Virus record (IMG/VR): IMGVR_UViG_3300027996_002186
Coordinates: 248,001-312,000 of that record
Direction: 5' to 3' (one strand)
Length of the DNA: 64,000 bases
The translations under genes and the position numbers were made by a program. Numbering within the stretch: position 1 is the first letter of the stretch; the number at the start of each line of letters is the position of its first letter. Below the pieces are notes generated by a model. That model saw only the letters and a program-made list of their open reading frames with translations, did not search any database and was not told where the DNA came from. Positions 1 to 43,283 of the stretch are shown one piece after another.

Positions 1-1776
1 ATATTCTATGCCTCTTTTATAAAAAGAATGTGCTGCTACTGCAATAGGTTGTGTAATAGCCGTGGTTGTATAACCATCAATATACCTTGTCCATGATCCA
101 ACTCTGAATTTATCATCAAAGAATTTAATAACATCTTTTGAATTATCATTTATTTTAATTCCTTTGATATAAAATGAATCTTTTAATTTTAACCTTTCAA
201 AATCACTTCTACTAAGATAAAATTTATAAACTTTGTGTGATATTTCTCTTGAACTAAATGTACCACCAGATTTATATTCGGAAATGTTAAACTCATCATA
301 ATCCAATATTTTAATTATTTCATCACTAAGATAATTTGAATTCTTTATAACTGATTTACCATAATTGGAGTTAACTGACTTTATGTTATTAAACATTGTA
401 TTTGTTGATCTAGATGTTTTAACTTCTGAATTATTAACAAAGGCATCTTCGAACCGACAATTCTCAAAGAATGCTTTATTTACTGTATTATTATACTTTT
501 GTGTTATTCCTAGTTGTTTGTTGATATATCGTAAAATATGACTTTCGACAATTGAATATGTTAATGATATATCACCACCAATATTTGTATTTATGAAATT
601 TCCGTTATTAACAACAGATTTTTTGATTTCAGAATCAATTATATAATTAAACCCTTTGTTATTATTATCTGGTTTGTTTACCTTTTGGTAAGGTATTCCA
701 TATTCATCAAGCTCAGATAAATAACTTTCTGGTAATGTATATTTAGAATCAAATGTACCATCTTCCCATTCAGTATTTAATAATGTTCCATTGTACCAAG
801 AACCTTTTCCTTCCCATTTTATTTTCTCATCTTGTCTACCATAAACTCCTGTGTTCCAATCTCCTTTAAAATTACCATTCCTAAAATTACCCTTAGTTAA
901 CAAAGATTGATTATATAAAATATTAATTATCCATTCTGATTGTGTACCTGGTACAGCATCGTGCTCTGGTGCCGTTCCCCACTCATAAGTAAATCCTTCT
1001 TTGAATTCAAATGATTTACCCCCAAAACTATGACTAAATGTATCATTTAATATTCTAACCTTGTTATTATTTGTGTATGTTGGTGAAAGTGCATAAGAAA
1101 ATGAACCAGACATAAACTCAGTTGTTATATTAGTCCATCCATCTATGTCATCTCTAACAAAAAATCCTGGACTACCAACTAAACCATCATTCTGACCCCA
1201 AGAAGTTAGTGGATCCCAATTTTGTTCTGTATAAATTATACTATTTTGATAGTAATTATATTTGTAATCAAAACTACCTTCTCTAGTTGTTATCTCTCTA
1301 TTAACATTTAAGAAATCTTCTTTTGTTTTAACGTTACGAACTTTTATAAATTGGTCTAAATCATCATCTTGCCAAACCGGAACACCTATATAATCAATAT
1401 CTAAAACAACTTGGCAATTATCAATGAATATAACTTTATAACCATCCCTACCTTTCTTATATTTATCTAATTTTATTAATAAATCATTGTCATAATTACC
1501 GTTAAGTATAAATACTCTATCACCAACTTTTAATCCAGAATTTACCTCAGTATAAAACAAGGTTTTTCTTATACCACCTATTATATAAGGCTCTACCCAA
1601 TTTAATAATCTTGGTGAAAAGGGTTTATCTGATTGATAATCTAAGCTTTTGAGAGGATCAACACCAACCAATTTTATATTATCACCAGCAGATTTTAAAT
1701 CCTCTGATGATATTAATCTAGGTTTGGTGGAAATTAATTTCCCAATATTTTTAGATAAAGATGAAAATGATGCCAT
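1..1776 (-). CDS. Large hypothetical (likely virion) protein, truncated by left window edge; contains NGxW/NGxF-type repeats
   Basis: Not in ORF track. ATG at 1776, MASFSSLSKNIGKL...; frame read open at both ends (592 codons to position 1, middle only spot-checked); repeats such as NGNFRNGNF and WYNGTLLNTEWEDGTF; TATATATA 23 nt upstream. Confidence 0.8.
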   Translation of the reverse strand, partial: MASFSSLSKNIGKLISTKPRLISSEDLKSAGDNIKLVGVDPLKSLDYQSDKPFSPRLLNWVEPYIIGGIRKTLFYTEVNSGLKVGDRVFILNGNYDNDLLIKLDKYKKGRDGYKVIFIDNCQVVLDIDYIGVPVWQDDDLDQFIKVRNVKTKEDFLNVNREITTREGSFDYKYNYYQNSIIYTEQNWDPLTSWGQNDGLVGSPGFFVRDDIDGWTNITTEFMSGSFSYALSPTYTNNNKVRILNDTFSHSFGGKSFEFKEGFTYEWGTAPEHDAVPGTQSEWIINILYNQSLLTKGNFRNGNFKGDWNTGVYGRQDEKIKWEGKGSWYNGTLLNTEWEDGTFDSKYTLPESYLSELDEYGIPYQKVNKPDNNNKGFNYIIDSEIKKSVVNNGNFINTNIGGDISLTYSIVESHILRYINKQLGITQKYNNTVNKAFFENCRFEDAFVNNSEVKTSRSTNTMFNNIKSVNSNYGKSVIKNSNYLSDEIIKILDYDEFNISEYKSGGTFSSREISHKVYKFYLSRSDFERLKLKDSFYIKGIKINDNSKDVIKFFDDKFRVGSWTRYIDGYTTTAITQPIAVAAHSFYKRGIEY

Positions 1777-1847
1777 TAATAGTTTGCAAACTTTTTAGTA
1801 TATATAAATTTGTTAATAGTTTCTATAAGGTATTAAACATTTTTACC

Positions 1848-1855
1848 TATATTTG
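1848..1855 (+). promoter_or_regulatory. Bacteroidota-type -7 promoter element TAnnTTTG
   Basis: TATATTTG 10 nt before sirtuin ATG. Confidence 0.6.
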
Positions 1856-1865
1856 TATAAATAAT

Positions 1866-2573
1866 ATGAAAAAGAAAATTTTAGTATTTACAGGAGCCGG
1901 AGTTTCGGCGGAGAGTGGGGTGGAAACATTTCGTGATACCAATGGATTATGGTGTAATCATAAGATAGAAGATGTGGCTACTCCTGATGGTTGGAAAAAA
2001 GACAAAGAAACTGTCTTAGAGTTCTATAACCAACGAAGAAAACAGTTAAAAACTGTATTTCCAAATAAAGCTCATGAAATAATTGCTGAATTAGAAAAGG
2101 ATTTTGATGTAACTGTTGTTACTCAGAATGTTGATAACCTCCACGAAAGAGCAGGTTCTACTAATGTTGTGCATTTACACGGTGAATTAACAAAAGTTCG
2201 TTCAACATTAAATCCTAGATTAATATATGATTGGGAAGATGATTTGAATATAGGTGATAAATGTGAGAAAGGTTCTCAACTAAGACCACATATAGTTTGG
2301 TTTAGTGAGGTTTTATCTACTAAAGATACTGAAAAGGCATACGTTGCAGCAGAAGAAGCTGATGTTTGTGTTGTTGTTGGTACTTCTATGCAAGTTTCTC
2401 CTGCAAATACTATACCTTTCTTAACAAAGGGAGATTCACTGATATATTATGTTGATCCATCTGAAATAAACTTCTTTATTGATAAACAGAGAAAACCGTT
2501 TTTTGAACACGTTAAGGGTGGTGCTGGTGATGGAATGGAAAAAGTTAAAAATGATTTAATTAAATTAATATGA
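1866..2573 (+). CDS. cobB: NAD-dependent protein deacylase, Sir2/CobB class III
   Basis: GAGVSAESG, TQNVDNLHERAG, LHG, RPHIVWF, GTS motifs; FYNQRR with class III Tyr/Arg; start moved to MKKKILV (1866). Confidence 0.9.
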   Translation: MKKKILVFTGAGVSAESGVETFRDTNGLWCNHKIEDVATPDGWKKDKETVLEFYNQRRKQLKTVFPNKAHEIIAELEKDFDVTVVTQNVDNLHERAGSTNVVHLHGELTKVRSTLNPRLIYDWEDDLNIGDKCEKGSQLRPHIVWFSEVLSTKDTEKAYVAAEEADVCVVVGTSMQVSPANTIPFLTKGDSLIYYVDPSEINFFIDKQRKPFFEHVKGGAGDGMEKVKNDLIKLI

Positions 2574-2794
2574 AAGAATATAATATTTATAAATCCGGAG
2601 ATTACTATAATGTGAAGTATGGTGATGGGTACGGTAGTTACTATAAAACTTATGATGAGTGTGTGAAAGAGGTTTCTAAATATTACACGATGGGTAATTT
2701 TGTTGAGGTTGAATCCGAATCTGAAATATCTGATCGTTTACAGAGAGAGAAAGCTTTGAAAAGAAATAATAAGATTGATCAAATTTTAGGATAA
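2570..2794 (+). CDS. Small hypothetical protein with C-terminal RxxK tag
   Basis: ATGA overlap; ends RNNKIDQILG. Confidence 0.75.
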   Translation: MKEYNIYKSGDYYNVKYGDGYGSYYKTYDECVKEVSKYYTMGNFVEVESESEISDRLQREKALKRNNKIDQILG

Positions 2795-3330
2795 TGGGAA
2801 TATATCATTTCTTAATAGCATTTTCAATAGTCATCCCATTTTTCGCATTGATGATATCAATACCGTCAATAATATCTATATTTAAGATAGGTCGTTCAGA
2901 TTATTTTAGAAATATAAAATTACTTTATAGACTTCCCAAGAAATTAAACTTATGTTATAAATTAGATTCTAGAATATCATATAATATAAATGGCCGGATA
3001 CATAATAGAAAGGATAAAGATTATTATTTTCCGATATATGTGAATGATGAAAATGTATTCATTGTTAATAAAAGTGATAAGGGTTTGTGGTATAATTTAA
3101 GAATAAATGATGCTAAGTATGATGGTGAAAATTGGAAAACAGACCTCATAGAAATAAGAACAACAACTTGTATGTTTACACAAATACTTAATGATAGATT
3201 TCAGAAAAAATTAGATAATTTAGTAGAATCATCAGTTATGTTAGAAGATATTGAAAATTTAAATCAATTAATAAATAGTGAGATAGTGAGTATAAGAAGA
3301 GAAAGTAAATTAAACCAAATAATAAACTAA
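2794..3330 (+). CDS. Hypothetical protein, N-terminal TM helix, C-terminal RxxK tag
   Basis: Hydrophobic residues 3-30; ends RESKLNQIIN. Confidence 0.75.
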   Translation: MGIYHFLIAFSIVIPFFALMISIPSIISIFKIGRSDYFRNIKLLYRLPKKLNLCYKLDSRISYNINGRIHNRKDKDYYFPIYVNDENVFIVNKSDKGLWYNLRINDAKYDGENWKTDLIEIRTTTCMFTQILNDRFQKKLDNLVESSVMLEDIENLNQLINSEIVSIRRESKLNQIIN

Positions 3331-3446
3331 TGGATTATAGTTGGATAATGACTAATCTAAATAAGGCATTACGAGAGAGTAGTACCTTTTTGAAATCTAG
3401 AAAAAGGAAAGAGAAATTGAAAAAACTTTTATATGAAAAAGCTTAA
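3330..3446 (+). CDS. 38 aa small protein with RxxK tag (missed by ORF track)
   Basis: TAATG coupling to upstream stop; MDYSWIMTNLNKALRESSTFLKSRKRKEKLKKLLYEKA. Confidence 0.6.
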   Translation: MDYSWIMTNLNKALRESSTFLKSRKRKEKLKKLLYEKA

Positions 3447-3696
3447 TGAGATAGTATTATATAAACCAACGGTGAATGATATTAAGAAGAAAATTAGATT
3501 TTTACCTAATTTAGATGAAAATCTTAGTAAACACAAACCATATTTTATAGACCATACTAGTATTATTAGTGGATTTAATAACCTTGGTAAGACTTCAATG
3601 AATTTATCAAATATGATGAATCAAATGACTCAGATGATGAATAGGTTGAAACCACATAATAGACGTAAAGATAAAATTAAAAGAATATTCGAATGA
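3433..3696 (+). CDS. Small hypothetical protein with RxxK tag
   Basis: Ends RKDKIKRIFE. Confidence 0.7.
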   Translation: MKKLNEIVLYKPTVNDIKKKIRFLPNLDENLSKHKPYFIDHTSIISGFNNLGKTSMNLSNMMNQMTQMMNRLKPHNRRKDKIKRIFE

Positions 3697-3827
3697 AACA
3701 AATGATTTTACTAAAGTCGAGACAAGTGGGTAAATCCTATATGAATTCAATGAATATGATGAAACATTTCATGGAATATAAAAAATTCTCAAGGTGTCAA
3801 AGTATAAAGAAAATATTTAATATATAA
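3693..3827 (+). CDS. 44 aa small protein with RxxS tag (missed by ORF track)
   Basis: ATGA overlap; MKQMILLKSRQVGKSYMNSMNMMKHFMEYKKFSRCQSIKKIFNI. Confidence 0.6.
   Translation: MKQMILLKSRQVGKSYMNSMNMMKHFMEYKKFSRCQSIKKIFNI
3819..3826 (+). promoter_or_regulatory. Putative phage late promoter AATATATA
   Basis: 20 nt before HD gene ATG. Confidence 0.45.
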
Positions 3828-3846: not shown

Positions 3847-4407
3847 ATGGACTTACAGGAGTTATTAAATAAATGGAATATAAAATGTGATGTTAATACA
3901 GTATTAGCTATGTGGAATGAATCTCATAGAGCTTATCATACATTAACACACTTAAATGATCTTATTGATCAGATAAATGAAAATAAATCAAAGTTTTCAG
4001 AAAAACAATATGAAAAACTCCTAATTACATCACTTTTTCACGATTGTATTTATGATCCAATGGCTTATGATAACGAAGAAAAGTCAGCAGATTTCTTTAT
4101 AGAATGTGCTGTTGATAAGACTAATGAAGATATACAAGAAATTAATCAAATGATACTTGATACAAAAACACACCAATCAAATACACTATTATCCGAATCT
4201 TTTAATAATTATGATATGAACATAGTTGAAAGAGACTTTGATCAACTTCTAATGTGGGAGGAAGGTATCCACGAAGAGTTTAAGGGTTATGGTGATGAAA
4301 TGTATAAGATGGGTAGATTAAAGTTCTTAGAATCACTCTTAGATAAATATCCAAATAACACAGAGAATTTAATTAAACTTGTTGATTGGGTTAAAGAAAA
4401 CTACTAA
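3847..4407 (+). CDS. HD-superfamily metal-dependent phosphohydrolase
   Basis: RAYHTLTHL, LFHDCIYDP, EEKSA motifs. Confidence 0.8.
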   Translation: MDLQELLNKWNIKCDVNTVLAMWNESHRAYHTLTHLNDLIDQINENKSKFSEKQYEKLLITSLFHDCIYDPMAYDNEEKSADFFIECAVDKTNEDIQEINQMILDTKTHQSNTLLSESFNNYDMNIVERDFDQLLMWEEGIHEEFKGYGDEMYKMGRLKFLESLLDKYPNNTENLIKLVDWVKENY

Positions 4408-5538: not shown

Positions 5539-6648
5539 TTATTTCTTGAACTCTTTTTTATCACTAGAGATATGGAAGTTCTCAAATTGAAAATACTTAT
5601 CATAAACTTCTTTAACCTTTTTCATGTTAACGTCATCTAAAATGTCATAAACAGACCATCCATCTGGGCTAATCCATTGTCCAACATTCTTATATCTAAG
5701 AATTTCATCTTTTTGTTTTCTAACTAAGTAATATTCTTTACATATGTTAAGTCTTTCTTTCGTTAGATACTTATCTGGTTTAGTTAAAACTTCTTTAGTA
5801 GCTTCAACAACAGCTTTATAGTTCTTATTTGATGTTAGTGTTGCGATAGTAGATATACCTTGTTTATTAACTCTAGATAAGTAACAATGTACGTAATAAA
5901 CTAATCCTTTTTTCTCTCTTATCTCTTGATAAAGAGGTGACATAAGACCCATAGATAACATAGCATTTATAAAATGCACATATCCAAAATCTTCTTCGAT
6001 CACAGGAGATAACATTATCAATGATGTTTTATCTTTAAATTCATTACCTAACTCAAGGTCAGTCTCGAAGTCACCATAAACTAATGGTTTAACTATTTCT
6101 CTTTCGGCGAAATCAATTGTATTATTTTTATATTCTTTACCCTTAGAAACGTTTATTATCTTAGTTGGTCTAGCATATTGTAATTCATAATAATTAAGAC
6201 AATCCATAAATTTCATTTTCTCTAAATCTGATTTTAATCCAATTGGATCATAATCATTAAATAATTTACGAGAAAGATTTAAGCTATGTGTTTGTGTTTG
6301 ATCATTAAAACAATCCATATATTCTTCTAAAACAATATTTCTTTCATTTTTAAATTGTTCTTTAGTAACGTTAAATTGACCAAGTAATTTTACAAATTCA
6401 TGTTTCCATTTATTTACCTTTTCTTCTAAACCTTGTATATAAAATACAATTTCGTTTCCAGAAGTATAAGCATTCCAATCAATACCATCTTTATCGAAAT
6501 CTTCTTGTAGGTGGTCGAAATTCTTACACATCAAGTGTTCCATTAAATGTGATATTCCGTACCATCCTGGCTTCTCTAAATTAGTTGATCCGTCATATAC
6601 GACATAGAATCCAGATAGATCTGTTTGTGATTTTAAATTTATTATCAT
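5539..6648 (-). CDS. M16 (insulinase-like) zinc peptidase
   Basis: GISHLMEH (HxxEH), WNAYT, ERNIVLEE, LYQEIREKKGLVY. Confidence 0.9.
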   Translation of the reverse strand: MIINLKSQTDLSGFYVVYDGSTNLEKPGWYGISHLMEHLMCKNFDHLQEDFDKDGIDWNAYTSGNEIVFYIQGLEEKVNKWKHEFVKLLGQFNVTKEQFKNERNIVLEEYMDCFNDQTQTHSLNLSRKLFNDYDPIGLKSDLEKMKFMDCLNYYELQYARPTKIINVSKGKEYKNNTIDFAEREIVKPLVYGDFETDLELGNEFKDKTSLIMLSPVIEEDFGYVHFINAMLSMGLMSPLYQEIREKKGLVYYVHCYLSRVNKQGISTIATLTSNKNYKAVVEATKEVLTKPDKYLTKERLNICKEYYLVRKQKDEILRYKNVGQWISPDGWSVYDILDDVNMKKVKEVYDKYFQFENFHISSDKKEFKK

Positions 6649-9406: not shown

Positions 9407-10129
9407 ATGATAGTAGTTTGTAAAAAAGGAACAAAACGTTTAATCAAAGGACATAGATATGAAGTTACAAGTCTATATAATAGTGGAGTTGGAAGTTCTT
9501 GGAGAAACGGTAAAATAGTTATTAAGAATATTGGTAGGTTTAGTGTTAAGAGCTTTACTGATACTAATGGTGAAGAAATAGCTAAAGTAGATTATCAGGC
9601 AACAATAGTAAGACCAACAAGATATACATTTGAAGATTGTAGTAAGGGAGATATATTAGTTTGTAATAGTGATAGATATAAAACATTTGTTAAGGGTGGT
9701 ATGTATAAAATTGAAGAATTAACAACCGTTAATAGTGTTGTTAATATCAAATATAATAACACTACTAGAAATGTAACTACAAATTATGTTAAATTTGTTG
9801 GTATAAAAAGAAAGTTGAAATTTAATTCTTGGAGTTTTAGAAGACTCAATTCAGATGAAGCAAGGGAGATTTCATTAAATCACATATTAAATAATGACGA
9901 TACTAATATCATAATAGAATCAGTTAAAAGAAATATTGAATTGGTTGATGATAAAGATGGTGTTTTGTTGAAAATATTAGCTAAGTCTATTTTAGATCCA
10001 TACAGACATGATTTATCAGTTATTGAATGGGGTTGTAATAAACACGGAGATAAACTTTCATTAGAATCTAGTGATTTTGATCCATACTTAAATATGACAC
10101 TTGCTGATATTTTGAAAAAAATAGATTAA
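9407..10129 (+). CDS. Hypothetical protein with internal RxxS tag
   Basis: ORF; REISLNHIL internal. Confidence 0.7.
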   Translation: MIVVCKKGTKRLIKGHRYEVTSLYNSGVGSSWRNGKIVIKNIGRFSVKSFTDTNGEEIAKVDYQATIVRPTRYTFEDCSKGDILVCNSDRYKTFVKGGMYKIEELTTVNSVVNIKYNNTTRNVTTNYVKFVGIKRKLKFNSWSFRRLNSDEAREISLNHILNNDDTNIIIESVKRNIELVDDKDGVLLKILAKSILDPYRHDLSVIEWGCNKHGDKLSLESSDFDPYLNMTLADILKKID

Positions 10130-10185: not shown

Positions 10186-10959
10186 ATGTACAATAAAATA
10201 TATGACTTTTGTAAAGTAAGAAATGTTGGTGGTGTTCATAGTAATGATCCCGAAAATCCAACACCAAGAGTTATATTCCTTATGGAGTTACTAGACTCAG
10301 AGGGTATTGAATATGAATTAGACAAATTCCCAACAAATGGGGGTTGGACTTCTAAAGAAGGAGTTGGTTATAATTTAATATTAAAGGGTACATCAAATCG
10401 AATGGTTGTTGCACATCACGATGTTAACAATCCTAACATAGATAATGCTAATGATAACTCAGCTTCCGTTATAAATGCTATAATGGTTAAGAAGTTAATG
10501 CCGAATATGAATGTTGTCCTATTGGATGGTGAAGAGTTTGGTGGGTTAGGTTCTCAAAGAGTTTCTGAGCAAATAAACGAAAATTACTACGGTGATATAG
10601 AATGGGTATTAAATTTTGAATTAACTGGTAAGGGTGGTAAACACTTTTTCATCGGTAATTATCCAGGTAAATTAACAGAGCACATCAAGTCTTTATTTGA
10701 TTGTCCTATTGTAAACACTCCTTATAATGATTCTGTTACTATTCGTAGAAATGGTATAGACTCTTGTGTTATTAATCCATTACCACCTTTATTAGAAGGT
10801 AAATCTCAAGTTAAATGGGAAGAAGATGTTTATTTGGATTATCAAATGTTATTCAATTGTCACAACGAAAGAGATAATATTGATTCTATTGATATTAAAG
10901 ACATGAAAGAATTTGTTGAAGAAGTTGCTATAAAAATACTTTCCTACCAATTGAACTAA
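10186..10959 (+). CDS. M28-family metallopeptidase
   Basis: VVAHHD, ANDNSAS, DGEEFG, LNFE, C-terminal H. Confidence 0.8.
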   Translation: MYNKIYDFCKVRNVGGVHSNDPENPTPRVIFLMELLDSEGIEYELDKFPTNGGWTSKEGVGYNLILKGTSNRMVVAHHDVNNPNIDNANDNSASVINAIMVKKLMPNMNVVLLDGEEFGGLGSQRVSEQINENYYGDIEWVLNFELTGKGGKHFFIGNYPGKLTEHIKSLFDCPIVNTPYNDSVTIRRNGIDSCVINPLPPLLEGKSQVKWEEDVYLDYQMLFNCHNERDNIDSIDIKDMKEFVEEVAIKILSYQLN

Positions 10960-13272: not shown

Positions 13273-13665
13273 TTAATTATTTCTTTTAATTCTATTTTCT
13301 ATCATATAGTCTCTTAGTCTAGCAGCTTCTTCATACTTTTCACCTTTCAATAGTTCCATCATTTTTTGATTTAACTCTTTCAATATTTCTTTTTTATCTT
13401 TTGATTCAGATATATTCGAAAGTGAATTATAGAATTCTTCCATCTTAGAGATATCAGGAAAATAAATAGGTGTTAATTCATAACCCCCTTCATTTGACAT
13501 TTTTTCTTGTAGTTCCTGTAACTTATCACTTTTTAAAATTTTACTAATAAAATTAGTATCGAGAGCGGAATTTTCGATTAAATATTTGCTTAAGTGATAT
13601 GGTCTATTTTTAAATAATTTAAGTAAAGTAACTAAATTATTATACAACTCGTCATCATTATTCAT
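13273..13665 (-). CDS. Protein with C-terminal UVR (UvrB/UvrC) motif
   Basis: MMELLKGEKYEEAARLRD. Confidence 0.7.
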   Translation of the reverse strand: MNNDDELYNNLVTLLKLFKNRPYHLSKYLIENSALDTNFISKILKSDKLQELQEKMSNEGGYELTPIYFPDISKMEEFYNSLSNISESKDKKEILKELNQKMMELLKGEKYEEAARLRDYMIENRIKRNN

Positions 13666-21769: not shown

Positions 21770-21777
21770 TATATTTG
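21770..21777 (+). promoter_or_regulatory. TAnnTTTG promoter element
   Basis: TATATTTG 4 nt before ligase ATG; second copy at 21686-21693. Confidence 0.55.
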
Positions 21778-23832: not shown

Positions 23833-24141
23833 ATGAATATGGTAAAATTGGAGATAGGATTTACACATATACGGTATATCTGGGTACCGGGTGATAAATC
23901 CACCGAAATGTATTACATGGGTGGTGAGTCAGAAGATAATGATAAAAGATTAACGATTGGTAATAGATATCGAGTTAGTCAACCACATTATGCAGAAAAT
24001 AAAGACCAGAAAAGAAGAAGAGTTTGGACTTGTAATGATGATGAAAATAAAGGGAAGCTTTGTAGAATCAATAAAGGAAATTTTAGTATTCTTCCACTTG
24101 ATAAACGCCGAGATAATAAACTTAAAAAAATATTAAAATGA
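23833..24141 (+). CDS. Hypothetical protein with RxxK tag
   Basis: Start moved to ATG 23833; ends RDNKLKKILK. Confidence 0.7.
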   Translation: MNMVKLEIGFTHIRYIWVPGDKSTEMYYMGGESEDNDKRLTIGNRYRVSQPHYAENKDQKRRRVWTCNDDENKGKLCRINKGNFSILPLDKRRDNKLKKILK

Positions 24142-24156
24142 TAACATTAAAAGAAA

Positions 24157-24783
24157 TTGAATCGTATGTATAATATAGAAGATGGAGATACCCTTAAAAT
24201 ATTACCATTCATAGAAAATGGTAAGTTGATATGGGGTAAGCAGTATGATCTTGTGAGTACTAATAGTGGTTTAGTTTATGACACAAATGGTTATTTAAGA
24301 AAGATGTGGTTTATACACAGAGATAAACGTTCTTATGATAAAGATTATTATAAACCTATTAGTTTATCGAAGAGAACTATGTTACACGTTTATGTAAATG
24401 GTGAATCAAAGTTAATAGGAGTCGGTAGAAAAATAGTTGATTTAGTAACTGAGAATAAATCAACTTTGTTTGACTTGAGATGTAATGATCACATTTTAGT
24501 ATCTAAAGATATGGTTAAGGTCAATCATCAAGGACTTATATTACCTAGTTATGACAACTGTTCTGTTATAACAAAGGATTGGAATGCTCCCGTAACAGAT
24601 ATTAATTCAAAAGAAGAATGGTTTGAGTATTTAATTAATAACCAACCAGAACCAAATCCATACGATTCAAAATATGATATATTAAATCAAAGAGATGCTT
24701 TGATAGATTTATTTGGTAGTGATTTATTAAGCGAAGTGATTAAAACAGAGAGAAATAAAAAGTTGGAAACAATATTAAATTAA
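24157..24783 (+). CDS. Degenerate T4 gp32-like ssDNA-binding-fold protein with RxxK tag
   Basis: LKILPF, IGVGRKIVDLV, LFDL, PSYDNCS echo gp32 IRFLP, FGKKIWD, SNYDES; ends RNKKLETILN. Confidence 0.45.
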   Translation: MNRMYNIEDGDTLKILPFIENGKLIWGKQYDLVSTNSGLVYDTNGYLRKMWFIHRDKRSYDKDYYKPISLSKRTMLHVYVNGESKLIGVGRKIVDLVTENKSTLFDLRCNDHILVSKDMVKVNHQGLILPSYDNCSVITKDWNAPVTDINSKEEWFEYLINNQPEPNPYDSKYDILNQRDALIDLFGSDLLSEVIKTERNKKLETILN

Positions 24784-24912: not shown

Positions 24913-25521
24913 ATGAAATTAGATGCAATAACTACATTCTCTGATCAAGAGAAATTATTCAGAGAAAGAACAGGTAAAGATTTTACCGAACTCTACCAAA
25001 AGTACTATCCAAAACTTATTTATTTCACAGGAAGAATTTGTAATGACCCTCAGAAAGCAGAGGATTTATCAACAGATGCTTTCATGACAGCACTTGAAAA
25101 AATCGAAAAGTATGACAGAGAGAAATCACAATTCTCGACATGGCTTTTCACAATCGCAAAAAATCTAACATTACAAAACATTAAGGTCTCTAAGAAGTCA
25201 GTATCATTAGATGTTGAATTTGATAACGAGGGTACAACTATGAAAGATTTCATAGAAGAAGACGACACATCAAACCAAACTGTTGTTAATAATGTCTTTG
25301 ATAAAAAGGCTACTATAATGAAAAGTAGAATCAAGCAATTAAAGGAACCGTATCGAACGGTAATTGAAATGAGAGAAATTAACAGGATGGCATATAAGGA
25401 TATAGCAGACCAACTTGGTAAAAACCTATCAACTATTAAATCACAAATTAGAAATGGCCGCCATATTCTTATTGAACAAACTCAAAATGAGTTTGATGAA
25501 ATAGATGAAATGTACCTTTAA
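24913..25521 (+). CDS. ECF-type sigma-70 factor
   Basis: Region 2 AEDLSTDAF, FSTWLFTIAKN; region 4 LKEPYRTVIEM...YKDIADQLGKNLSTIKSQIRNGR. Confidence 0.9.
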   Translation: MKLDAITTFSDQEKLFRERTGKDFTELYQKYYPKLIYFTGRICNDPQKAEDLSTDAFMTALEKIEKYDREKSQFSTWLFTIAKNLTLQNIKVSKKSVSLDVEFDNEGTTMKDFIEEDDTSNQTVVNNVFDKKATIMKSRIKQLKEPYRTVIEMREINRMAYKDIADQLGKNLSTIKSQIRNGRHILIEQTQNEFDEIDEMYL

Positions 25522-27192: not shown

Positions 27193-27861
27193 ATGGAATC
27201 AATTGAATATTTATATGACCTTGTTGATAAGTCTGATGTTTCAGTTTTAGGATACACTTATAAAAGTGAAAGAATAAAGGATGAATTTATTTCAAGATTA
27301 CCACACTTGAAAATTGGTGAAGTAGATTCATCCTTCAGTTTCGTTAGTTATTTGAGAGAAATAAAACTAACACAGATTTTGGGAGATTCTCCTTATTTCA
27401 AGTATGTTGTGTTGGATATAGGTGATGTGAGATATTCGAGTAAGGTTGATGGTATGGGATTTTCAGTGGTTATAAGGAAAATGATTGAGAAAATCAGAAC
27501 AGATATGTTCAAAGCATACAACAAAATACAAGAAGAAAGTTTAGGTCTTGATTTTGATGATCCAGAAAGTCACAAACCAGAAGTTATAGAAACCCCTTAT
27601 AAATTAATAATAACAACCCCAATGTATAAGAGTTCAAGTAAGTTTCAGATACATAATTTTACTGGTGGTGATTCTACACTAATGATTTCTGATTTAGCGT
27701 TTGTTATACAAGACTCTAATATAACAGATAAACTTCTTGGAAAGAAACCATATATATCCATAATGAAGAATCGATATGGTATGGATGGTGAAAATGTTTC
27801 ACTTGAAGAAATTTTATTACCATTAGAGAGAAACTATAAATTAGAAAAGGTTCTTAATTAA
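27193..27861 (+). CDS. Hypothetical protein with two RxxK tags
   Basis: Internal REIKLTQIL, terminal RNYKLEKVLN; KNRYG is reminiscent of DnaB C-terminus. Confidence 0.7.
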   Translation: MESIEYLYDLVDKSDVSVLGYTYKSERIKDEFISRLPHLKIGEVDSSFSFVSYLREIKLTQILGDSPYFKYVVLDIGDVRYSSKVDGMGFSVVIRKMIEKIRTDMFKAYNKIQEESLGLDFDDPESHKPEVIETPYKLIITTPMYKSSSKFQIHNFTGGDSTLMISDLAFVIQDSNITDKLLGKKPYISIMKNRYGMDGENVSLEEILLPLERNYKLEKVLN

Positions 27862-27868: not shown

Positions 27869-28306
27869 ATGAGTATAGTAAAAAATAGAAAAGCATATTA
27901 TGAATATCACATACTTGATGAGTATGAAGCTGGTGTTGTGCTTATGGGTAGTGAAGTTAAATCTATAAGAATGGGTAATGTAACATTATCTGATTCATTC
28001 ATATACTTAAAAAGTGGTGAGGTTTGGATAAAGAATCTAAAGGTAGCAAGGTATGCACAAACTCATATTTCCGAACCACATAATGAGAATCGTGATAAAA
28101 AACTACTTTTAACTAAAAAAGAAATAAATAAAATAAGTAGAAGTTTAGAAGACCAAGGTATAACTTGTATTCCACTTACTATTTTTACTAAACGAAATAA
28201 GCTTAAGATAAAAATTGGTGTTGCTAAGGGAAAAAAGCTTTTTGATAAAAGGCAGAGTATTAAAGAGAAGGATATGAAAAGAGAACTTCAAAGAAATCTA
28301 AAATAA
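27869..28306 (+). CDS. smpB: SsrA-binding protein SmpB
   Basis: NRKAYYEY, EAGVVLMGSEVKS, KKLLL, GVAKGKKLFDKRQSIKE. Confidence 0.95.
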   Translation: MSIVKNRKAYYEYHILDEYEAGVVLMGSEVKSIRMGNVTLSDSFIYLKSGEVWIKNLKVARYAQTHISEPHNENRDKKLLLTKKEINKISRSLEDQGITCIPLTIFTKRNKLKIKIGVAKGKKLFDKRQSIKEKDMKRELQRNLK

Positions 28307-28308: not shown

Positions 28309-28680
28309 ATGTCTAAAGAAGAAGAATTTATTTTTTTATTTGAGGAATTAGAAAACTCAAATAATGAAGAAGAAGTTTTTAAGAATCTTAAAAGAATTCT
28401 TAAAGAATCTAGTTCTGTCTTTTATAAGAATAAAATACTTAATAACCCATATTTCAAATCTCTTTTGATTGATGTAAGGGAAGATGTATTAATAGAAATA
28501 TCAGAAATAAGGAAATCATTAAAGGATGAAATAAAATCAATTGATGTTGAAATTATGAGTCTTTTGTCTAAAGACAAAGACAACTCAAATATAAATAAAT
28601 TCAAATCATTGAAACGAGATTGTATATCATTAGTTTATGAAATCGATGATAGAAAAAAAGATATAATTAATTTAATATAG
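28309..28680 (+). CDS. Hypothetical coiled-coil protein
   Basis: Coupled ORF; ends RKKDIINLI (possible tag variant). Confidence 0.6.
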   Translation: MSKEEEFIFLFEELENSNNEEEVFKNLKRILKESSSVFYKNKILNNPYFKSLLIDVREDVLIEISEIRKSLKDEIKSIDVEIMSLLSKDKDNSNINKFKSLKRDCISLVYEIDDRKKDIINLI

Positions 28681-30394
28681 ATTTTATATACTTTTCTATA
28701 TTTTTCAATCTTTCTAAATCATTTTTCATTATATCAATGTCATCAATATTACTATCATTATTCATATAATCTATAACTCCCGTTGGTGATGATGAATTAG
28801 AAAACATTTTATCTAAGCAATGTCTTATAGGTGTGGATTCTGGCTTAAATAAATTATTAATCATAACTTTTCTAATAGACTCAACTTTGCTACATAAAAA
28901 TATGTATTCTTCAATAGAATTTATTTCTTGTTTTAATAAGTAATCTTTTATATACGAACCTAAATATTTACAAATTTTAAGATATTCATTTAGTAGATCA
29001 AATTGTTTGCCTTTTTCTGGTATATCTATATATGTCTGATAATTTTTAGATATTTTATTTTTATAAAAAGAAGATCTTTCATTACTATCTTCATAAAGAA
29101 TTATTACTTTATTAAAATTTCTTTTAATTCTTTCTTCACTATATTCATCTTTAATGGATACCATTAAAGTCAAAATAGACTTATAAAATTGCTCAACATA
29201 GGTTCCAAATTCTGGTCTATTACTATTAATTGAGAAGTATGAATAATCTCCTAATATTGTTGTTGATATAAATTTTTGTAAATTTTTCAAGTCTATTGAC
29301 TTTACATTTATTCCCATTTTGGAAACCAAAATACCTATATATCTTTTAATATTATCGTTTTTAATATCATTATCACTCATTAATTTTAAAGCTCCTAGTC
29401 TATTTACAATTCTATCATTATTAGTTTCTGAACTTTTCTTAAATCCAGCATCTAACATTTTATCTAGATATATAACAACTGCAAAATCAGCATTTTCAAT
29501 ATCTTTCCAATTTTTATTATAAAGTGAGGTGTGTTCATCTTTATATTTAGACCAATTTTTTAATCTACCACGACCACTTAATGGTAAATTAAATATAAAT
29601 GGACTATCTATTTTTTCTTCAGGTTTATTATCGAAATCACTAATAATTAAAGGATAGGCACCTTCTGTATATTTATACACCAGTGAATGGTCATCATTTA
29701 TACTACCTGGGTTACCTAATGACCATGAATACATATGATTTCCACCCAACCAATTTGGAATTCCTATTGAAGAATCAGATCCCCAATTTTTCCAATCGTT
29801 ATTAGGGGGTGAGCTACCCGAAGAAACATCTTGTATAGCATATAATTGTGGATGTGGGGCATTGGTGTCTATATATATTTTACCCTTAGAAAAGCTATCA
29901 AAACTTAGTGAATTATTGAAACAACCAATAATATCATCACCATGTTTAAGATCATAATAATCAACAATTTTAGTTAATGTTCCGGTTTTTATATTTAATG
30001 TGTTTTTTATATATGATACAATTTCACTTGTCATAACATTTCTTTTGTTATTATCATTACTTTGCCACATGATAAAATCATCCATCTTTTTATCACCAAC
30101 ACCAGTATATCCTATAAACCCATCTTCTAAAGAGAACCAGAATTTTAAACAAAAAACACCTTTATCATTTGATACTTCATTATCTGAGTTTATTAATAAA
30201 GCTTTTTTAGCAGATAAATATTCAACATCATTATCTGATATCTTATCAATTGGGTAATCATAATTTTTCAAAATACTTTTTAACCCAATAACAAACTTTT
30301 TAGAATGTTTTTTACCAACCCTTTTACTAACATATTTTAATACTTTAGAAATTGCATCAGAATCAAACGCCTCATATAGATATAAATACTTCAT
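28667..30394 (-). CDS. Putative internal head protein
   Basis: MKYLYLYEAF; AATATATA at 30400-30407, 5 nt upstream. Confidence 0.7.
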   Translation of the reverse strand: MKYLYLYEAFDSDAISKVLKYVSKRVGKKHSKKFVIGLKSILKNYDYPIDKISDNDVEYLSAKKALLINSDNEVSNDKGVFCLKFWFSLEDGFIGYTGVGDKKMDDFIMWQSNDNNKRNVMTSEIVSYIKNTLNIKTGTLTKIVDYYDLKHGDDIIGCFNNSLSFDSFSKGKIYIDTNAPHPQLYAIQDVSSGSSPPNNDWKNWGSDSSIGIPNWLGGNHMYSWSLGNPGSINDDHSLVYKYTEGAYPLIISDFDNKPEEKIDSPFIFNLPLSGRGRLKNWSKYKDEHTSLYNKNWKDIENADFAVVIYLDKMLDAGFKKSSETNNDRIVNRLGALKLMSDNDIKNDNIKRYIGILVSKMGINVKSIDLKNLQKFISTTILGDYSYFSINSNRPEFGTYVEQFYKSILTLMVSIKDEYSEERIKRNFNKVIILYEDSNERSSFYKNKISKNYQTYIDIPEKGKQFDLLNEYLKICKYLGSYIKDYLLKQEINSIEEYIFLCSKVESIRKVMINNLFKPESTPIRHCLDKMFSNSSSPTGVIDYMNNDSNIDDIDIMKNDLERLKNIEKYIKSILN

Positions 30395-31824: not shown

Positions 31825-32247
31825 ATGATGTATAAGATAGATAAACAACAAGCATATCATTCCTTTACGGTTATGCCCAAAGATTGTAATTTCAATAAAA
31901 GGGATAATGGCGGTAATGATACACTATTTGGAGGTAAGTTAATGTATGAGATGGATTATGCTGGTGCTAAAATAGCTAGAAGAGCTACTTATGGTATCGA
32001 TATTGACATGATAGTAACTGCTTCAACTGACAGGATTAACTTTGAGAAACCTGCCTTTATTGGTGATTTGGTAACTATGGAAGCCACTATTAAAGCTTAT
32101 GGTAAATCATCTATACAAATACGTATAAAGGTAAGGAGAGAAGATTTGAAAGGTGAGGTAGAACAAATTTGCTCAGCTAATATGACTTTTGTTACTATAA
32201 AAGGTGGTAAGCCGATAACTCATGGATTATGCTTTACTAAAAATTAA
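31825..32247 (+). CDS. Acyl-CoA thioesterase (hotdog fold, YciA-like)
   Basis: VMPKDCN, LFGGKLMYEMD, VTAS, INFEKPAFIGD, ANMTFV. Confidence 0.85.
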   Translation: MMYKIDKQQAYHSFTVMPKDCNFNKRDNGGNDTLFGGKLMYEMDYAGAKIARRATYGIDIDMIVTASTDRINFEKPAFIGDLVTMEATIKAYGKSSIQIRIKVRREDLKGEVEQICSANMTFVTIKGGKPITHGLCFTKN

Positions 32248-32254
32248 TATTAAT

Positions 32255-32524
32255 ATGAATTCAACTAGATTAGATTTAATTAAAGATGGTGATGTAGTTA
32301 TAATAGTTGGGAATAATCAACCATTTAAGGTTTTTAGTAAGAGTAGTTTGTCTAGGAAAGTTAAGGGTATTTGGTTATTAACAGGTGATGAAATTTTTTT
32401 AGATGGTGGAGAAGCTACATTACCAACAGACCAAGATTGGATACTATCATTAGTTGAGAAACTAGAAAATGATAAAATCGAAATTGATAAAAGAATCAAA
32501 TCTATAAAATCTATTGTTAATTAA
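32255..32524 (+). CDS. Small hypothetical protein with RxxS tag
   Basis: Start moved to 32255; ends RIKSIKSIVN. Confidence 0.6.
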   Translation: MNSTRLDLIKDGDVVIIVGNNQPFKVFSKSSLSRKVKGIWLLTGDEIFLDGGEATLPTDQDWILSLVEKLENDKIEIDKRIKSIKSIVN

Positions 32525-39700: not shown

Positions 39701-40310
39701 ATTGTCCACCAATTATAACAGAGTTAACCACACCAGGACTCATCATTGAATTTCTAGTACCAACAAAAACAGCTTGTTTGTTATTATCACTAGTTGATGA
39801 TGTTGAACTACCATTATTTGATATTTTCAAATCATCGCGTGATAACAAACCAACACCTAATTTCAAATCACCCAATGTATTATATAATTCAATATTATCA
39901 GTTCCATCATGAAGCACTAAAGCTTGTGAATATCCATTAGCAAAAAGTGAATAATTTGAATCATCCATTAAAATACCATGTTCTCCTTGAGAAGCATTAT
40001 CAGTTGATATTAATATTGAATTTGTACTACCAGAATAATCTAAATCTATTCTACCTCCACCATTTGATGATAATATCGAAGTTGATGTTCCCATTATTAA
40101 GGGTACATTAGCAATGTTTGAGATACCCATAACTTCACTCAGAGAAGGGGTTAAACCTAATTCTGGACCACCACCAATTTCGGTGATAATTCCAAATTCA
40201 TCTTTTTGTTTTAATATACCATCTAAATCATAAGCCACAACTTTACCACCACTTGATGGAGTTGCCGCTGTTAACATATCTAAGGTACTGCCGAATATTA
40301 CTGATGCCAT
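36774..40310 (-). CDS. Long tail fibre protein
   Basis: 1178 aa; 3x [YF]LPL[AT]GGTMSG, 3x R.W.[ML]P..[ST]GT[VI].L; AATATATA at 40334-40341. Confidence 0.75.
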   Translation of the reverse strand: MASVIFGSTLDMLTAATPSSGGKVVAYDLDGILKQKDEFGIITEIGGGPELGLTPSLSEVMGISNIANVPLIMGTSTSILSSNGGGRIDLDYSGSTNSILISTDNASQGEHGILMDDSNYSLFANGYSQALVLHDGTDNIELYNTLGDLKLGVGLLSRDDLKISNNGSSTSSTSDNNKQAVFVGTRNSMMSPGVVNSVIIGGQSITGSQSNYVYIGGSLNINDSYTLPNIDGSSGQLLTSDGLGNIYWSSDVNTSGLSDVLLIDNNSGTHNIIMGTSTNILSSNGSSEIHLDYNGSPNSIYISPDPFLPTNISLDTDISINAANTASVFTGNLQGFVYVTDYSGTFVNNSLVSKLYVDSGTSSLWTAIDNINNDYITEVIGGVGLTGGGTAGVVTLDVNLETNSGLTFSVDDITLELNSNSLEVDSNNQIRLKDTVVGNRTFADSVIISGDLTVSGTATYVNTEELYVADNIITLNATYSSGTPFLDAGVHVLRGSSQSSSIIWDETLEYWALGLSGSESTIITEAGSGLTKTNNELSVDFGTVSSITYVDTQVGNYLPLTGGTMSGSINLSSGEALQLLDNSYINLSTDAYSGLQYQSAGNEVVLYNNKPGGDVVLDGGSTGQIRFEQDGTNKMEFTNTSLAIGGTFGFRFGLSGSFTGDIKSSILTDNRDWIMPNISGTVSLSSDLDTATNSLWIAIDNINNDYITEVIGGQGLTGGGTAGVVTLDAQVNNGLSITSDYIGLGGTLSQNTSINSDGYDITLGDIGYLLFTSSVFDVESDFVSLDSGTGSTQILSGGDTTLSSTNLDLLATDGVYVVGSSFSVNSVEIDPTSATNGQALLFDGVKFSPSTLSGTYLPLAGGTMSGDITNGGYDIYADEITLTGATAIDFGGNLGYITNPAGVLTIRSNKNTTIDANGQTYDFSDSGPQITITGSGMAPGSLVMDASDGTIRATLSGIENTLDLSTLPTTDRSWGMPDATGTVALVSGNPTGDFLPLAGGTMSGNIAMGLNQLQFVGDNIYNDSGSLIIEGNTAGVVLIDDTGDEMEFSGGIGLMTSGFWLDSTTSDRMFEFIQANGTIFGGRLGSSVLMADRTWRLPDASGTIALTSDIINKVSDIRNFTASVAETIIHNLNTEDLIIQTYDSTGLQIIPDTIQINGTASIDVTISQTLTNIKTIII
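38128..38227. repeat. ~100 bp internal direct repeat in fibre gene (copy 2 at 39121-39220)
   Basis: Both encode W.AIDNINNDYITEVIGG.GLTGGGTAGVVTLD. Confidence 0.9.
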
Positions 40311-41526: not shown

Positions 41527-41827
41527 GACTGATAAAGAGAAAGCTTATAATTTATCTTGTAGATTCAGAAGAATAAATCTCATACGTAGTTTGAAGGATT
41601 TTTCTATCGAGCATCAAGAGTATGAATTTGCGGCATATCTTAGAGATATTGAAAGAGATATTGAAAAGGAACATGATTTTGATGAAGAGGTATTAACACT
41701 TGATGATGTCTATATAAGATTGACAAAATTATATGAGAAAATGAGAGAGAGTAATTCAAAAGATTATCTTAACTCAGTATTAAGAGAACATAAAATAGAT
41801 ACAATACTAAAAAACCCACTCGATTGA
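41519..41827 (+). CDS. UVR-motif-like protein with RxxK tag
   Basis: QEYEFAAYLRDIE; REHKIDTIL near C-terminus. Confidence 0.65.
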   Translation: MSKTDKEKAYNLSCRFRRINLIRSLKDFSIEHQEYEFAAYLRDIERDIEKEHDFDEEVLTLDDVYIRLTKLYEKMRESNSKDYLNSVLREHKIDTILKNPLD

Positions 41828-43054: not shown

Positions 43055-43126
<72 letters not shown>

Positions 43127-43283
43127 CTAAAAGAGAAGAAATTCCCAAATAAATGAAAATAAATTTGGTTAGAAATAACTAAATGTTAAATAACTGGAGT
43201 TTTTTAATTTATTCTAAATATGTAATAATCTACTCTATGTAAATAATTTTCGGATTCAAATAGTTTATATGCTTTTAAGTATC

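Follow-up and report, generated by a model that had tools for sequence, protein, structure and literature searches.

A recurrent C-terminal motif at the locus

The window examined here is the whole 64,000-nt stretch of IMG/VR record IMGVR_UViG_3300027996_002186, positions 248,001 to 312,000, derived from a huge marine phage. Near its left end, a Bacteroidota-type −7 promoter box, TATATTTG, heads a unit that comprises a Sir2 gene, five consecutive small genes and a gene for a 186-aa protein. The five small genes encode otherwise unrelated products, all of which end in the motif R-x-x-[KS]-[IL]-x-x-[ILV]-[ILFV]. A sequence-only reading of this DNA had listed eleven proteins with this C-terminal motif and three internal copies. 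We found all eleven terminal peptides and all three internal copies at those genes, and that observation is confirmed. In total, eleven of about 77 window proteins end in the motif, 0–5 residues before the stop, the individual motifs each ending 1–5 residues before it. Five small ORF calls at 36–1046 were spurious and were excluded from this ratio, because a minus-strand ORF of at least 598 codons runs off the left edge of the window. The features are collected in Table 1, in which LR denotes the related, complete 634,780-bp phage LR745206.1.

Table 1 Tagged genes, internal motif copies and promoter boxes in the window (positions refer to the window; tag, the C-terminal motif; id, identity)
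Position (strand)	Feature	Motif (nt)	Observations
1848–1855 (+)	TATATTTG, Bacteroidota-type −7 box		10 nt before the real Sir2 start (1866); heads the unit Sir2, five carriers, 186-aa gene (3847–4407)
2570–2794 (+)	74-aa carrier	RNNKIDQIL (2762–2788), then G and a stop	LR orthologue (42% id) ends RNSVIDKILG
2794–3330 (+)	178-aa carrier with an N-terminal membrane anchor	RESKLNQII (3298–3324)	LR orthologue (61% id) keeps RDSKLNLLI; K/R residues follow the anchor in the LR orthologue
3330–3446 (+)	38-aa carrier, little more than the tag	RKEKLKKLL (3405–3431)	Basic subtype; LR has a 41-aa counterpart ending RKNKIKKLL
3433–3696 (+)	87-aa carrier	RKDKIKRIF (3664–3690)	Single strain difference inside the tag is synonymous
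3693–3827 (+)	44-aa carrier	RCQSIKKIF (3792–3818)	Third-position strain differences at 3698, 3701 and 3731
9407–10129 (+)	240-aa protein with an internal copy	REISLNHIL (9863–9889)	Identical in the LR orthologue; status uncertain
21770–21777 (+)	TATATTTG box		12 nt before the NAD-ligase start; heads the unit that holds carriers 23833 and 24166
23833–24141 (+)	102-aa carrier in the NAD-ligase unit	RDNKLKKIL (24109–24135)	
24166–24783 (+)	205-aa predicted gp32-like ssDNA-binding protein (assigned by fold)	RNKKLETIL (24751–24777), then N and a stop	R196, N197, K199, L200, I203 and L204 invariant in 7 orthologues
27193–27861 (+)	222-aa carrier with an internal and a terminal copy	REIKLTQIL (27355–27381, internal); RNYKLEKVL (27829–27855, terminal)	LR orthologue (53% id) keeps the internal copy and has lost the terminal one
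32222–32524 (+)	100-aa carrier	RIKSIKSIV (32492–32518)	
41519–41827 (+)	102-aa carrier overlapping the end of the M42 peptidase gene	REHKIDTIL (41783–41809)	Sub-threshold UVR motif at residues 18–50; LR orthologue keeps REYKLEKIL; TATATTTG at 40367 lies upstream of the unit
57837–58202 (−)	121-aa carrier, the only one on the minus strand	RDDKLQEII (starts at 57881, runs downward)	LR orthologue ends RDDRISEII
59466–60212 (+)	248-aa protein with an internal copy	RDNSINSII (59664–59690)	Compatible with chance

Enrichment and level of selection

To test whether the motif is concentrated at C-termini beyond what a K/I/L-rich composition would produce, as the sequence-only reading had proposed, we compared protein tails with internal positions. 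The window contains 11 hits in 574 tail positions against 5 in 18,273 internal positions, a 70-fold enrichment (Fisher 7e-14). Shuffling the last 15 residues of each protein gave a mean of 0.1 hits and a maximum of 3 in 5000 trials, the reversed motif scored 0 in tails, and no N-terminal hits were found. In LR745206.1, 91 proteins carry the motif within 6 residues of the end, against 0.76 expected from the internal rate, and a broadened pattern raised the count to 125 of 957 proteins against 1.2 expected, a more than 100-fold excess. The broadened pattern also matched the C-terminal segment of ClpP (R-Y-G-M-I-D-E-I-L), which we count as a false positive because it looks like the conserved ClpP core. 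Internal hits run only about 2-fold above the tag-less clade, and accordingly the internal copy at 9863 could be due to chance.

Selection acts on the protein rather than on the DNA. Within the tag, Arg is encoded by AGA, AGG, CGT and CGA in genome proportions, and the same holds for Lys, Ile, Leu and Asp. Information peaks at codon positions 1–2, whereas third positions carry little, and the Ser at position +3 of the window tags (counting from the Arg as 0) is written both AGT and TCT. When the gene at 3433–3696 was compared with contigs of a 95–99% variant found in RNA libraries, the differences fell almost only on third codon positions, and in and around the tag only synonymous sites change. 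These metatranscriptome contigs cover parts of the five-gene cluster at low depth, and cannot prove transcription.

The carrier bodies are unrelated. A BLAST comparison of 102 carrier bodies at E 1e-3 yielded 98 components, the only links being orthologue pairs and one pair internal to LR745206.1, and logo positions −20 to −5 are nearly flat. Pfam and PHROGs searches of the carriers gave nothing usable: none of 99 carriers scanned has a credible Pfam domain, and no Pfam family is shared, in comparison with about 20 of 45 untagged window proteins that have one. A profile of 38 tails searched against PDB sequences returned only chance hits, such as a myosin IQ motif and uL18. Our literature searches likewise found no description of the motif.

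Sequence and predicted structure of the tag

The consensus is (K/I/L)-(S/Q)-x-(I/L)-R-(D/E/N)-x-K-(I/L)-(N/K/D/E)-x-(I/L/V)-(L/I/F)-x-COOH, located 0–6 residues from the end and most often 1, and the residues that follow it vary (K, D, N, E, G and others). On a helical wheel the conserved residues lie on one face, namely the Arg, the Lys at +3 and the hydrophobic residues at +4, +7 and +8, flanked by polar or acidic residues at +1 and +5, whereas the two variable positions point away from that face. D or E occupies +1 in 66 of 102 tags, and many tags have D, E or N at +5 and +9. The mean net charge of the decamer is +1.15, and 42 of 125 decamers are at or below 0. Phe occurs at +8 in 13 of 102 tags and no aromatic residue occurs at +7. 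A minor, basic, Phe-ending subtype (RKxKIKxIF) is found on very small proteins.

AF2 modeling placed the tag of the protein encoded at 24166–24783 in a terminal helix spanning residues 185–204, the tag itself lying at 196–204 of 205. In a conserved 78-aa carrier, the tag lies behind a low-confidence linker that follows a confidently modeled body, for which Foldseek found no significant match. Six carriers have an N-terminal anchor followed by K/R residues, from which we infer that the tag is on the cytoplasmic side.

The sequence-only reading had remarked that the tag of a gp32-like protein stands where gp32 has its interaction tail. This remark fits the gene at 24166–24783, at fold level only: Foldseek matched its model to T4 gp32 (8gme_B, E 1e-4, prob 1.0) and to phage SSBs in BFVD. 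The model is of only moderate confidence (pLDDT 64.6), and the assignment has no sequence-level support. A search of the ESM Atlas with the tail of this protein returned nothing. The 222-aa carrier at 27193, considered as an alternative gp32-like gene, gave no gp32 signal. The tag is the most conserved segment of the predicted SSB and is retained in orthologues of 28–37% and of 31% identity.

Promoter class, genomic neighborhood and range

A scan for sigma-70 consensus promoters was uninformative, with 41 hits against 38 expected, and we therefore used de novo k-mer enrichment. In units headed by TATATTTG, 24% of genes are tagged, against 3.7% in units headed by the phage motif TTAATATATA (OR 8.3, p 9e-14). 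The same layout is seen in the window, where plus-strand genes carry TATATTTG upstream and minus-strand genes carry TTAATATAT, in agreement with the remark of the sequence-only reading that nearly all carriers lie on the plus strand with genes of the host-promoter type. In neighborhoods that hold tail and baseplate genes only 5 of 1268 genes are tagged, compared to 56 of 806 around the sigma gene. Recognizable enzymes and regulators lack the tag, including NAD ligase, the Toprim protein, the primase-like protein, both PolB halves, the sigma factor and aminoacyl-tRNA synthetases.

The tag is confined to one subclade of Bacteroidota-infecting huge phages, in which it marks roughly 13% of the proteome. 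It is absent from 976 genes in 49 loci of equally AT-rich relatives. The replisome of the lineage is clade-wide and T4-type, with a split PolB, a gp44-like clamp loader with a Gp44_lid domain and the gp32-like SSB predicted by fold. The C-terminal half of PolB ends RRLSVVMDIFGGFK and sigma ends EFDxIDEMYL, and both tails are conserved in tag-less relatives. The clamp-loader tail, GK[FLI]RDIL-x, is tag-like, but it directly follows the last conserved segment (TNTDPI...) and is kept in a relative whose sampled locus has no tags, suggesting that it is probably structural. A search with T4 gp45 did not identify a clamp gene.

LR745206.1 encodes a 701-aa double-AAA+ ClpC/ClpA-type protein with a UVR middle domain and two ClpP, and the unfoldase is 85% identical in the genome of the window. 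One ClpP is co-transcribed with a 210-aa protein ending RDYKIQKIM-E. The window is rich in peptidases (M16, M28 twice, M42) and has SmpB. However, the unfoldase occurs in more than 576 contigs, including the 49 loci without a single tag, and thus predates the tag. We therefore rejected its distribution as specific evidence for a link to the tag. Only its N-terminal extension seems limited to roughly the tag-bearing clade, which is a weak lead. No phage tmRNA whose tag peptide might resemble the motif was found in the window or in LR745206.1.

Discussion

Our results identify the tag as a genuine, portable short linear motif, predicted to form a C-terminal amphipathic helix of about 10–14 residues, on proteins that are nearly all small, soluble, lineage-specific and transcribed from host-type (early) promoters. 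The analysis itself establishes that the motif exists and is enriched at C-termini, that selection acts on its amino acids, that it is portable, associated with early genes, restricted to one clade and conserved in orthologues, and that it is predicted to be helical. Its cytoplasmic side, its docking function, the existence of a single receptor and the identity of that receptor are inferred, as would be any recruitment of replication partners, binding to a clamp or effect on half-life or localization. The interpretation offered by the sequence-only reading, a portable amphipathic-helix address label amounting to a phage-wide protein-sorting system, is thus partly supported: the helix, its C-terminal enrichment, its link to the host-promoter class and its position on a protein predicted to be gp32-like hold, whereas a sorting system is not shown, nor is the choice among docking, targeting and degradation. 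The tag is also not phage-wide in the sense of all protein classes.

We favor, tentatively, the view that the helix is flexibly exposed at the end of each carrier and plugs into a groove of one common, as yet unidentified, cytoplasmic receptor. Because the tag sits exactly where every characterized SSB carries its partner-docking tail, this receptor would most likely be the protein or proteins that read the tail of the phage SSB, a component of the replication and recombination machinery. In this view, the more than 100 orphan proteins would use the same plug to be brought to that machinery, or to compete there. The tails of E. coli SSB (DDDIPF), T4 gp32 (the A-domain) and T7 gp2.5 are partner-docking elements, and in T7 the tail is shared by two proteins, gp2.5 and gp4. 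Those tails are acidic and belong to one or two proteins read by many partners, whereas here many proteins carry one basic, hydrophobic tail that is predicted to be helical and has an invariant Arg and Lys. The interchangeable C-termini of T4 gp43, gp55 and gp33 dock on gp45 (PMC2988020), providing a precedent for one hub shared by unrelated proteins of one phage, although T4 has three or four such clients and more than 100 clients on one replisome component has no known precedent in phages. Moreover, the absence of the tag from recognizable DNA-metabolism enzymes indicates that it is not a general ticket to the replication site, and carriers of only 36–54 aa are hard to explain as recruited effectors.

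Several rivals remain open, although each appears unlikely. The tag could be a degron, or an adaptor tether, that delivers early orphan proteins, or host proteins bound by them, to the ClpC-like unfoldase and ClpP of the lineage, clearing take-over proteins and recycling amino acids for late synthesis. The presence of this protease, the co-transcription of one ClpP with a tagged protein, the abundance of peptidases and the marking of transient-looking early orphans rather than early enzymes are consistent with this idea, and variable bodies with a constant C-terminal element that binds a degradation hub are found in poxvirus ankyrin/PRANC F-box proteins and in SspB with its C-terminal ClpX-binding peptide. 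However, PRANC is a folded domain of about 50 aa on paralogous proteins and SspB is a single protein. Clp C-terminal degrons of the ssrA-like or ClpX C-motif kind depend on the last residues and the free carboxylate at a fixed distance, whereas here the terminal residues vary and the conserved pattern has helical periodicity. In addition, a strongly conserved tag on an SSB that is needed stoichiometrically and in bulk throughout replication argues against a simple constitutive degron. About equally unlikely is a localization or assembly label that would gather early proteins, through a scaffold or by self-association of the helices, into a replication factory, condensate or shell, in which the SSB would belong. 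A signal shared by more than 10% of a proteome, short, terminal, portable and found in clusters of consecutive carriers, is typical of sorting signals, and encapsulin cargo-loading peptides, microcompartment encapsulation peptides and peroxisomal PTS1 are likewise short terminal elements on unrelated proteins read by one receptor or shell. Their consensus is unrelated, however, no shell or scaffold candidate was found, the ligase, the primase-like protein, the polymerase halves, the sigma factor and aminoacyl-tRNA synthetases lack the tag, and the hydrophobic spacing does not fit a heptad coiled coil.

A sliding-clamp-binding, PIP-like tail is less likely still. The register of hydrophobic residues (+4, +7, +8), often with D/N at +5, matches that of the T4 motif SLDFL[FY], which we read from the gp43 and gp55 tails, and of the PIP box. 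Yet aromatic residues are rare at the last two positions, +1 is D, E, N or K rather than Gln, the basic Arg and Lys contrast with the hydrophobic-acidic T4 motif, the canonical clients carry different tails, and the tag is a subclade innovation in a clade-wide replisome. A membrane-targeting helix of the MinD or FtsA type is very unlikely, since acidic residues are frequent and an invariant Arg in the middle of the hydrophobic face is not expected for lipid binding; only the minor RKxKIKxIF subtype resembles the MinD-type sequence. A virion-loading signal is similarly improbable: C-terminal helices of scaffolding proteins dock on HK97-fold coat proteins, encapsulin cargo uses C-terminal peptides and huge phages package many proteins, but tags sit in early units away from capsid genes. 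Finally, the genome is 28% G+C with K/I/L-rich tails, and carriers are often translationally coupled. Nevertheless, the shuffles, the codon usage, the variable distance to the stop, the unrelated bodies and the absence of the motif from AT-rich relatives do not support chance, a DNA- or RNA-level element (promoter, recombination cassette or coupling signal), a nascent-peptide effect on termination or the relic of one paralogous family, and we regard these readings as highly improbable.

A bolder possibility, which we consider doubtful but compatible with the data, is a phage-encoded, proteome-scale address system, in which a ten-residue helix invented in one subclade of Bacteroidota megaphages would hand more than 100 early proteins, about a quarter of early-unit gene products, together with the SSB to a single dedicated receptor that would set their place or lifetime in the infected cell. 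As far as we could find, this would be the first described general protein-sorting or handling signal of a phage. Most genes of huge phages are orphans with no handle for study, and a tag shared by about 13% of the proteome gives one experimental entry point to more than 100 of them; finding the receptor would show where these proteins go or what they are attached to. The tag is also a simple sequence marker for early genes and for one megaphage subclade in metagenomes. If it proves to be a dedicated address or turnover signal, it would provide a compact, portable peptide tag for Bacteroidota and would show that phages can evolve their own proteome-wide protein-handling code.

Genomic context of the window and its complete relative

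The window has 28% G+C and is densely coding in the standard code. It is identical to parts of IMG/VR contigs of 483 and 313 kb and to a 492,776-bp marine metagenome contig, and it also occurs in many marine and seawater metagenomes. Its only near relative in the phage collection is LR745206.1 (hereafter LR), an unannotated 634,780-bp uncultured phage with 76–78% nucleotide identity over conserved parts. Al-Shayeb et al. report that their five genomes above 634 kb fall in the Mahaphage clade and are predicted to infect Bacteroidetes (PMC7162821). A 133-aa protein of the window gave a sub-threshold match to the type IX secretion C-terminal sorting domain (Por_Secre_tail, E 1.2e-4; 22.8 bits against a cut-off of 27), a Bacteroidota-specific signal that fits the inferred host phylum.

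The window encodes Sir2, a Dam-type methylase, an M16 peptidase, a Toprim protein, CoaE, two M28 peptidases and one M42 peptidase, NAD ligase, GluRS, a HisRS-like fragment, YqeY, thioredoxin, SmpB, an S1-domain protein, a PolB-type exonuclease and a sigma-70-family factor. The SmpB is full-length (E 1e-53), but no tmRNA was found in the window with ARAGORN or Rfam, or in LR with ARAGORN. ARAGORN detected 59 tRNA genes in several clusters in LR, whereas the window has one tRNA-Met. The stretch at the left end of the window looks ORF-free in the ORF list, but it is the 5' part of a minus-strand gene that runs off the edge. The coordinates of these and other features are collected in the table.

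Coordinates of features in the window and in LR745206.1
Sequence	Position	Strand	Feature
Window	1-1794	-	5' part of a gene of at least 598 codons; 76% identical to LR745206.1 304804-306497
Window	1848-1855, 8698, 21770, 24788, 40367, 50621, 55041, 58248, 62786	+	TATATTTG boxes
Window	upstream of 28667-30394, 36774-40310, 52729-54969, 60213-62162 (examples)	-	TTAATATAT about 15 nt before gene starts
Window	3433-3696, 3693-3827	+	Carriers compared with a variant strain
Window	5539-6648, 10186-10959, 40456-41526, 55071-56258		M16, two M28 and M42 peptidases
Window	13273-13665		130-aa protein with a sub-threshold UVR motif
Window	24166-24783	+	Carrier, predicted gp32-like ssDNA-binding protein
Window	24913-25521		Sigma-70-family factor
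Window	27869-28306		SmpB
Window	41519-41827	+	Tagged carrier with a sub-threshold UVR motif
Window	43055-43127		tRNA-Met
Window	44025-44681, 44784-45389	-	Adjacent DUF2589 paralogues
Window	52297-52698		133-aa protein, Por_Secre_tail match
LR745206.1	123556-124221, 75119-75859, 423224-425329		Two ClpP and a ClpC-like unfoldase (the unfoldase, with a UVR middle domain, at 423224-425329)
LR745206.1	232803-234344 and 130568-131992	+ and -	Split family-B DNA polymerase
LR745206.1	342554-421559		59 tRNA genes

The C-terminal motif is strongly enriched

The sequence-only reading had claimed that otherwise unrelated proteins of the window end in a shared peptide. To examine this claim, we scanned all six frames for the proposed pattern and found it 20 times, with eleven occurrences lying 1–5 residues before the stop of a real ORF. 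The observation held. Relative to internal positions the enrichment is 70-fold (Fisher 7e-14), and for the strict form R..K[IL]..[IL][ILF] it is 255-fold. Shuffling the last 15 residues of each protein gave a mean of 0.1 hits and never more than 3 in 5000 trials. The reversed motif had no hit in tails, and the forward motif had none at N-termini.

We then analyzed the whole of LR, which has 91 carriers among 957 called genes, where the internal rate predicts 0.76. A broadened pattern gave 125 carriers (13%), where 1.2 are expected. The sequence logo is (K/I/L)-(S/Q)-x-(I/L)-R-(D>E,N,K)-x-K-(I>L)-(N,K,D,E)-x-(I>L,V)-(L>I,F)-(K/D/N)-stop. One residue after the motif is the commonest spacing (39 of 102), with a range of 0–6. 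With the hydrophobic triad and the Lys fixed, Arg is found in 103 of about 140 tails, making it the strongest position. In L093 (IMGVR_UViG_3300027749_000039), four carriers end in a variant tag, W-R-[DE]-x-Q-I-[DN]-x-I-L, in which Gln replaces Lys at +3 and Trp precedes the Arg; these may be tandem paralogues or a lineage-specific shift of the motif.

Selection acts on the protein, and the motif is portable

In the window the Arg is written AGA, AGG, CGT and CGA, the Ser at +3 is written AGT and TCT, and Leu is written TTA, TTG, CTT and CTA, with information peaking at codon positions 1 and 2. Over 125 tags, the codon frequencies for Arg, Lys, Ile, Leu and Asp broadly match the genome-wide ones. 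Contigs of a 95–99% similar strain differ from the window almost only at third codon positions in two consecutive carrier genes and in the next gene, and the one change inside the tag of the first of these carriers is AAA>AAG. These observations also argue that the tiny ORFs are real genes, and they rule out a promoter, a recombination cassette or another nucleic-acid element.

When the tail was removed, 102 carriers fell into 98 BLAST components. Of the four links, three are window/LR orthologue pairs and one joins two LR proteins. Carriers range from 36 to 731 aa, with a median of about 100–109 depending on the set, and are mostly soluble, with acidic bodies. None of 99 carriers scanned has a credible Pfam domain, and PHROGs adds almost nothing; in contrast, about 20 of 45 untagged window proteins have a credible Pfam domain. 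Six carriers have an N-terminal hydrophobic anchor followed by Lys/Arg, from which we infer, by the positive-inside rule, that the tag is located in the cytoplasm.

The tag is conserved and restricted to one subclade

Five of seven window/LR orthologue pairs keep the tag although the bodies are only 41–61% identical, and one, the gene starting at 27193, has it only in the window. In the seven known orthologues of the carrier starting at 24166, the residues R196, N197, K199, L200, I203 and L204 are invariant, and a 31% identical homologue still ends REKKIGSIID. Around the conserved sigma-factor gene, 35 related IMG/VR loci hold 56 tags in 806 genes. Around a conserved ClpC-like gene the picture is sharp: the 31 loci whose protein best matches that of LR (roughly 65–85% identical) hold 33 tags in 828 genes, whereas the 49 more distant loci hold none in 976 genes of similar base composition. 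The tag is therefore an innovation of one subclade, and the tag-less loci serve as a natural negative control for composition.

The tag marks early genes

De novo k-mer enrichment upstream of LR genes gave two motifs. The first, TA[TA][TA]TTTG, mostly TATATTTG, lies 4–40 nt before the ATG and is the -7 box typical of Bacteroidota promoters. The second, TTAATATATA, lies about 15 nt before the ATG. Genes in units headed by the first motif are tagged in 61 of 251 cases, and those headed by the second in 12 of 324 (OR 8.3, p 9e-14). The contrast persists for proteins of 200 aa or less (29% against 5.5%).

In the window these two promoter-like classes are segregated by strand. The + strand carries the first motif, with very short leaders, before metabolic and replication genes; this covers the Sir2 unit with five carriers, the ligase unit with the carriers starting at 23833 and 24166, and the M42 unit with the carrier starting at 41519. 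The - strand, with its large structural-type genes, carries the second. TATATTTG occurs 25 times against 12.5 expected. On the - strand, two adjacent DUF2589 paralogues are each preceded about 15–31 nt upstream by a TATATA-type motif (AAATATATA and TTAATATAT, respectively). The sigma-70-family factor (regions 2 and 4) has its own TATATTTG box and may direct the TTAATATATA class. Neighbourhoods of the clamp-loader gene, which hold tail and baseplate genes, have 5 tags in 1268 genes.

A predicted gp32-like ssDNA-binding protein carries the tag

Only one carrier, that starting at 24166, could be given a function. Its AF2 model has a pLDDT of 64.6 and places the tag inside a terminal helix (185–204). 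The model matches T4 gp32 in the gp32-Dda complex (8gme_B, E 1e-4, probability 1.0, TM 0.44) ahead of other OB-fold ssDNA binders, and in BFVD it matches phage SSBs. Sequence-level searches gave no support, so this is a fold-level assignment of moderate confidence. Orthologues at 28–37% identity all end in the tag. The characterised SSB tails (E. coli SSB-Ct, the T4 gp32 A-domain and T7 gp2.5) are partner-docking elements. A second model, of a 78-aa carrier conserved across the clade, has a confident body (pLDDT 86–93), a low-confidence linker (residues 56–61) and a separate C-terminal helix that holds the tag.

Alternative explanations and interpretation

A role of the tag in Clp proteolysis is suggested by the gene content of this lineage, which encodes a ClpC/ClpA-type unfoldase with a UVR middle domain and two ClpP, one of them co-transcribed with a tagged protein. 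The set of proteolysis genes is unusually rich, comprising the four peptidases of the window and, in LR, the two ClpP and the unfoldase, which lacks a recognisable Clp_N domain and has homologues in more than 576 IMG/VR contigs. UVR (UvrB/UvrC) motifs, both just under the Pfam cut-off, also occur in a 130-aa protein and in a tagged carrier of the window, and such small UVR proteins might be adaptors of the unfoldase. However, the unfoldase is present throughout the tag-less clade, the predicted SSB carries the tag, and the variable last residues are unlike known Clp degrons.

The closest precedent is offered by the clamp-binding tails of T4, in which the hydrophobic register is the same; the interchangeable C-termini of T4 gp43, gp55 and gp33 dock on gp45 (PMC2988020). 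In this lineage, however, the polymerase and the sigma factor end in different, conserved tails. The family-B DNA polymerase of LR is split into two genes about 100 kb apart on opposite strands, the N-half holding the exonuclease and the start of the polymerase domain, and the C-half (Pfam DNA_pol_B 2.7e-21) holding the rest and ending RRLSVVMDIFGGFK. An orthologue with the same tail (KRLSVVMDIFGG) is present in L097, a relative whose sampled locus has no tags. The sigma tail, EFDxIDEMYL, is conserved across the clade, including loci without tags; it is acidic-hydrophobic and resembles the clamp-binding end of T4 gp55 (SLDFLYEAND). Membrane targeting fits only the minor basic subtype of the tag, and capsid loading conflicts with the early-gene association. 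Chance, DNA-level elements, paralogy and a nascent-chain effect are excluded or unlikely.

The principle of a shared C-terminal docking peptide is known, but full-text literature searches found no description of such a motif. What is new here is this sequence, its scale (13% of a proteome and a quarter of early-unit genes), and its restriction to orphan proteins plus the predicted SSB.

On a helical wheel, R0, K+3 and the hydrophobic +4, +7 and +8 share one face, flanked by D/E/N at +1 and N/D at +5, whereas the variable +2 and +6 point away. In our reading of the logo, this is the signature of a helix that inserts into a groove of a protein partner. Profile, PDB and Atlas searches returned no candidate for such a receptor. 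The proposal of the sequence-only reading, that the tag is a portable helical address label, is thus partly supported: the enrichment, protein-level selection, portability, conservation, subclade restriction and early-gene association come directly from the analysis, whereas the cytoplasmic side, the docking function, a single receptor and its identity are inferred. Our best reading, which remains tentative, is that the tag is a docking motif for one common cytoplasmic receptor, probably the reader of the SSB tail in the replication and recombination machinery.
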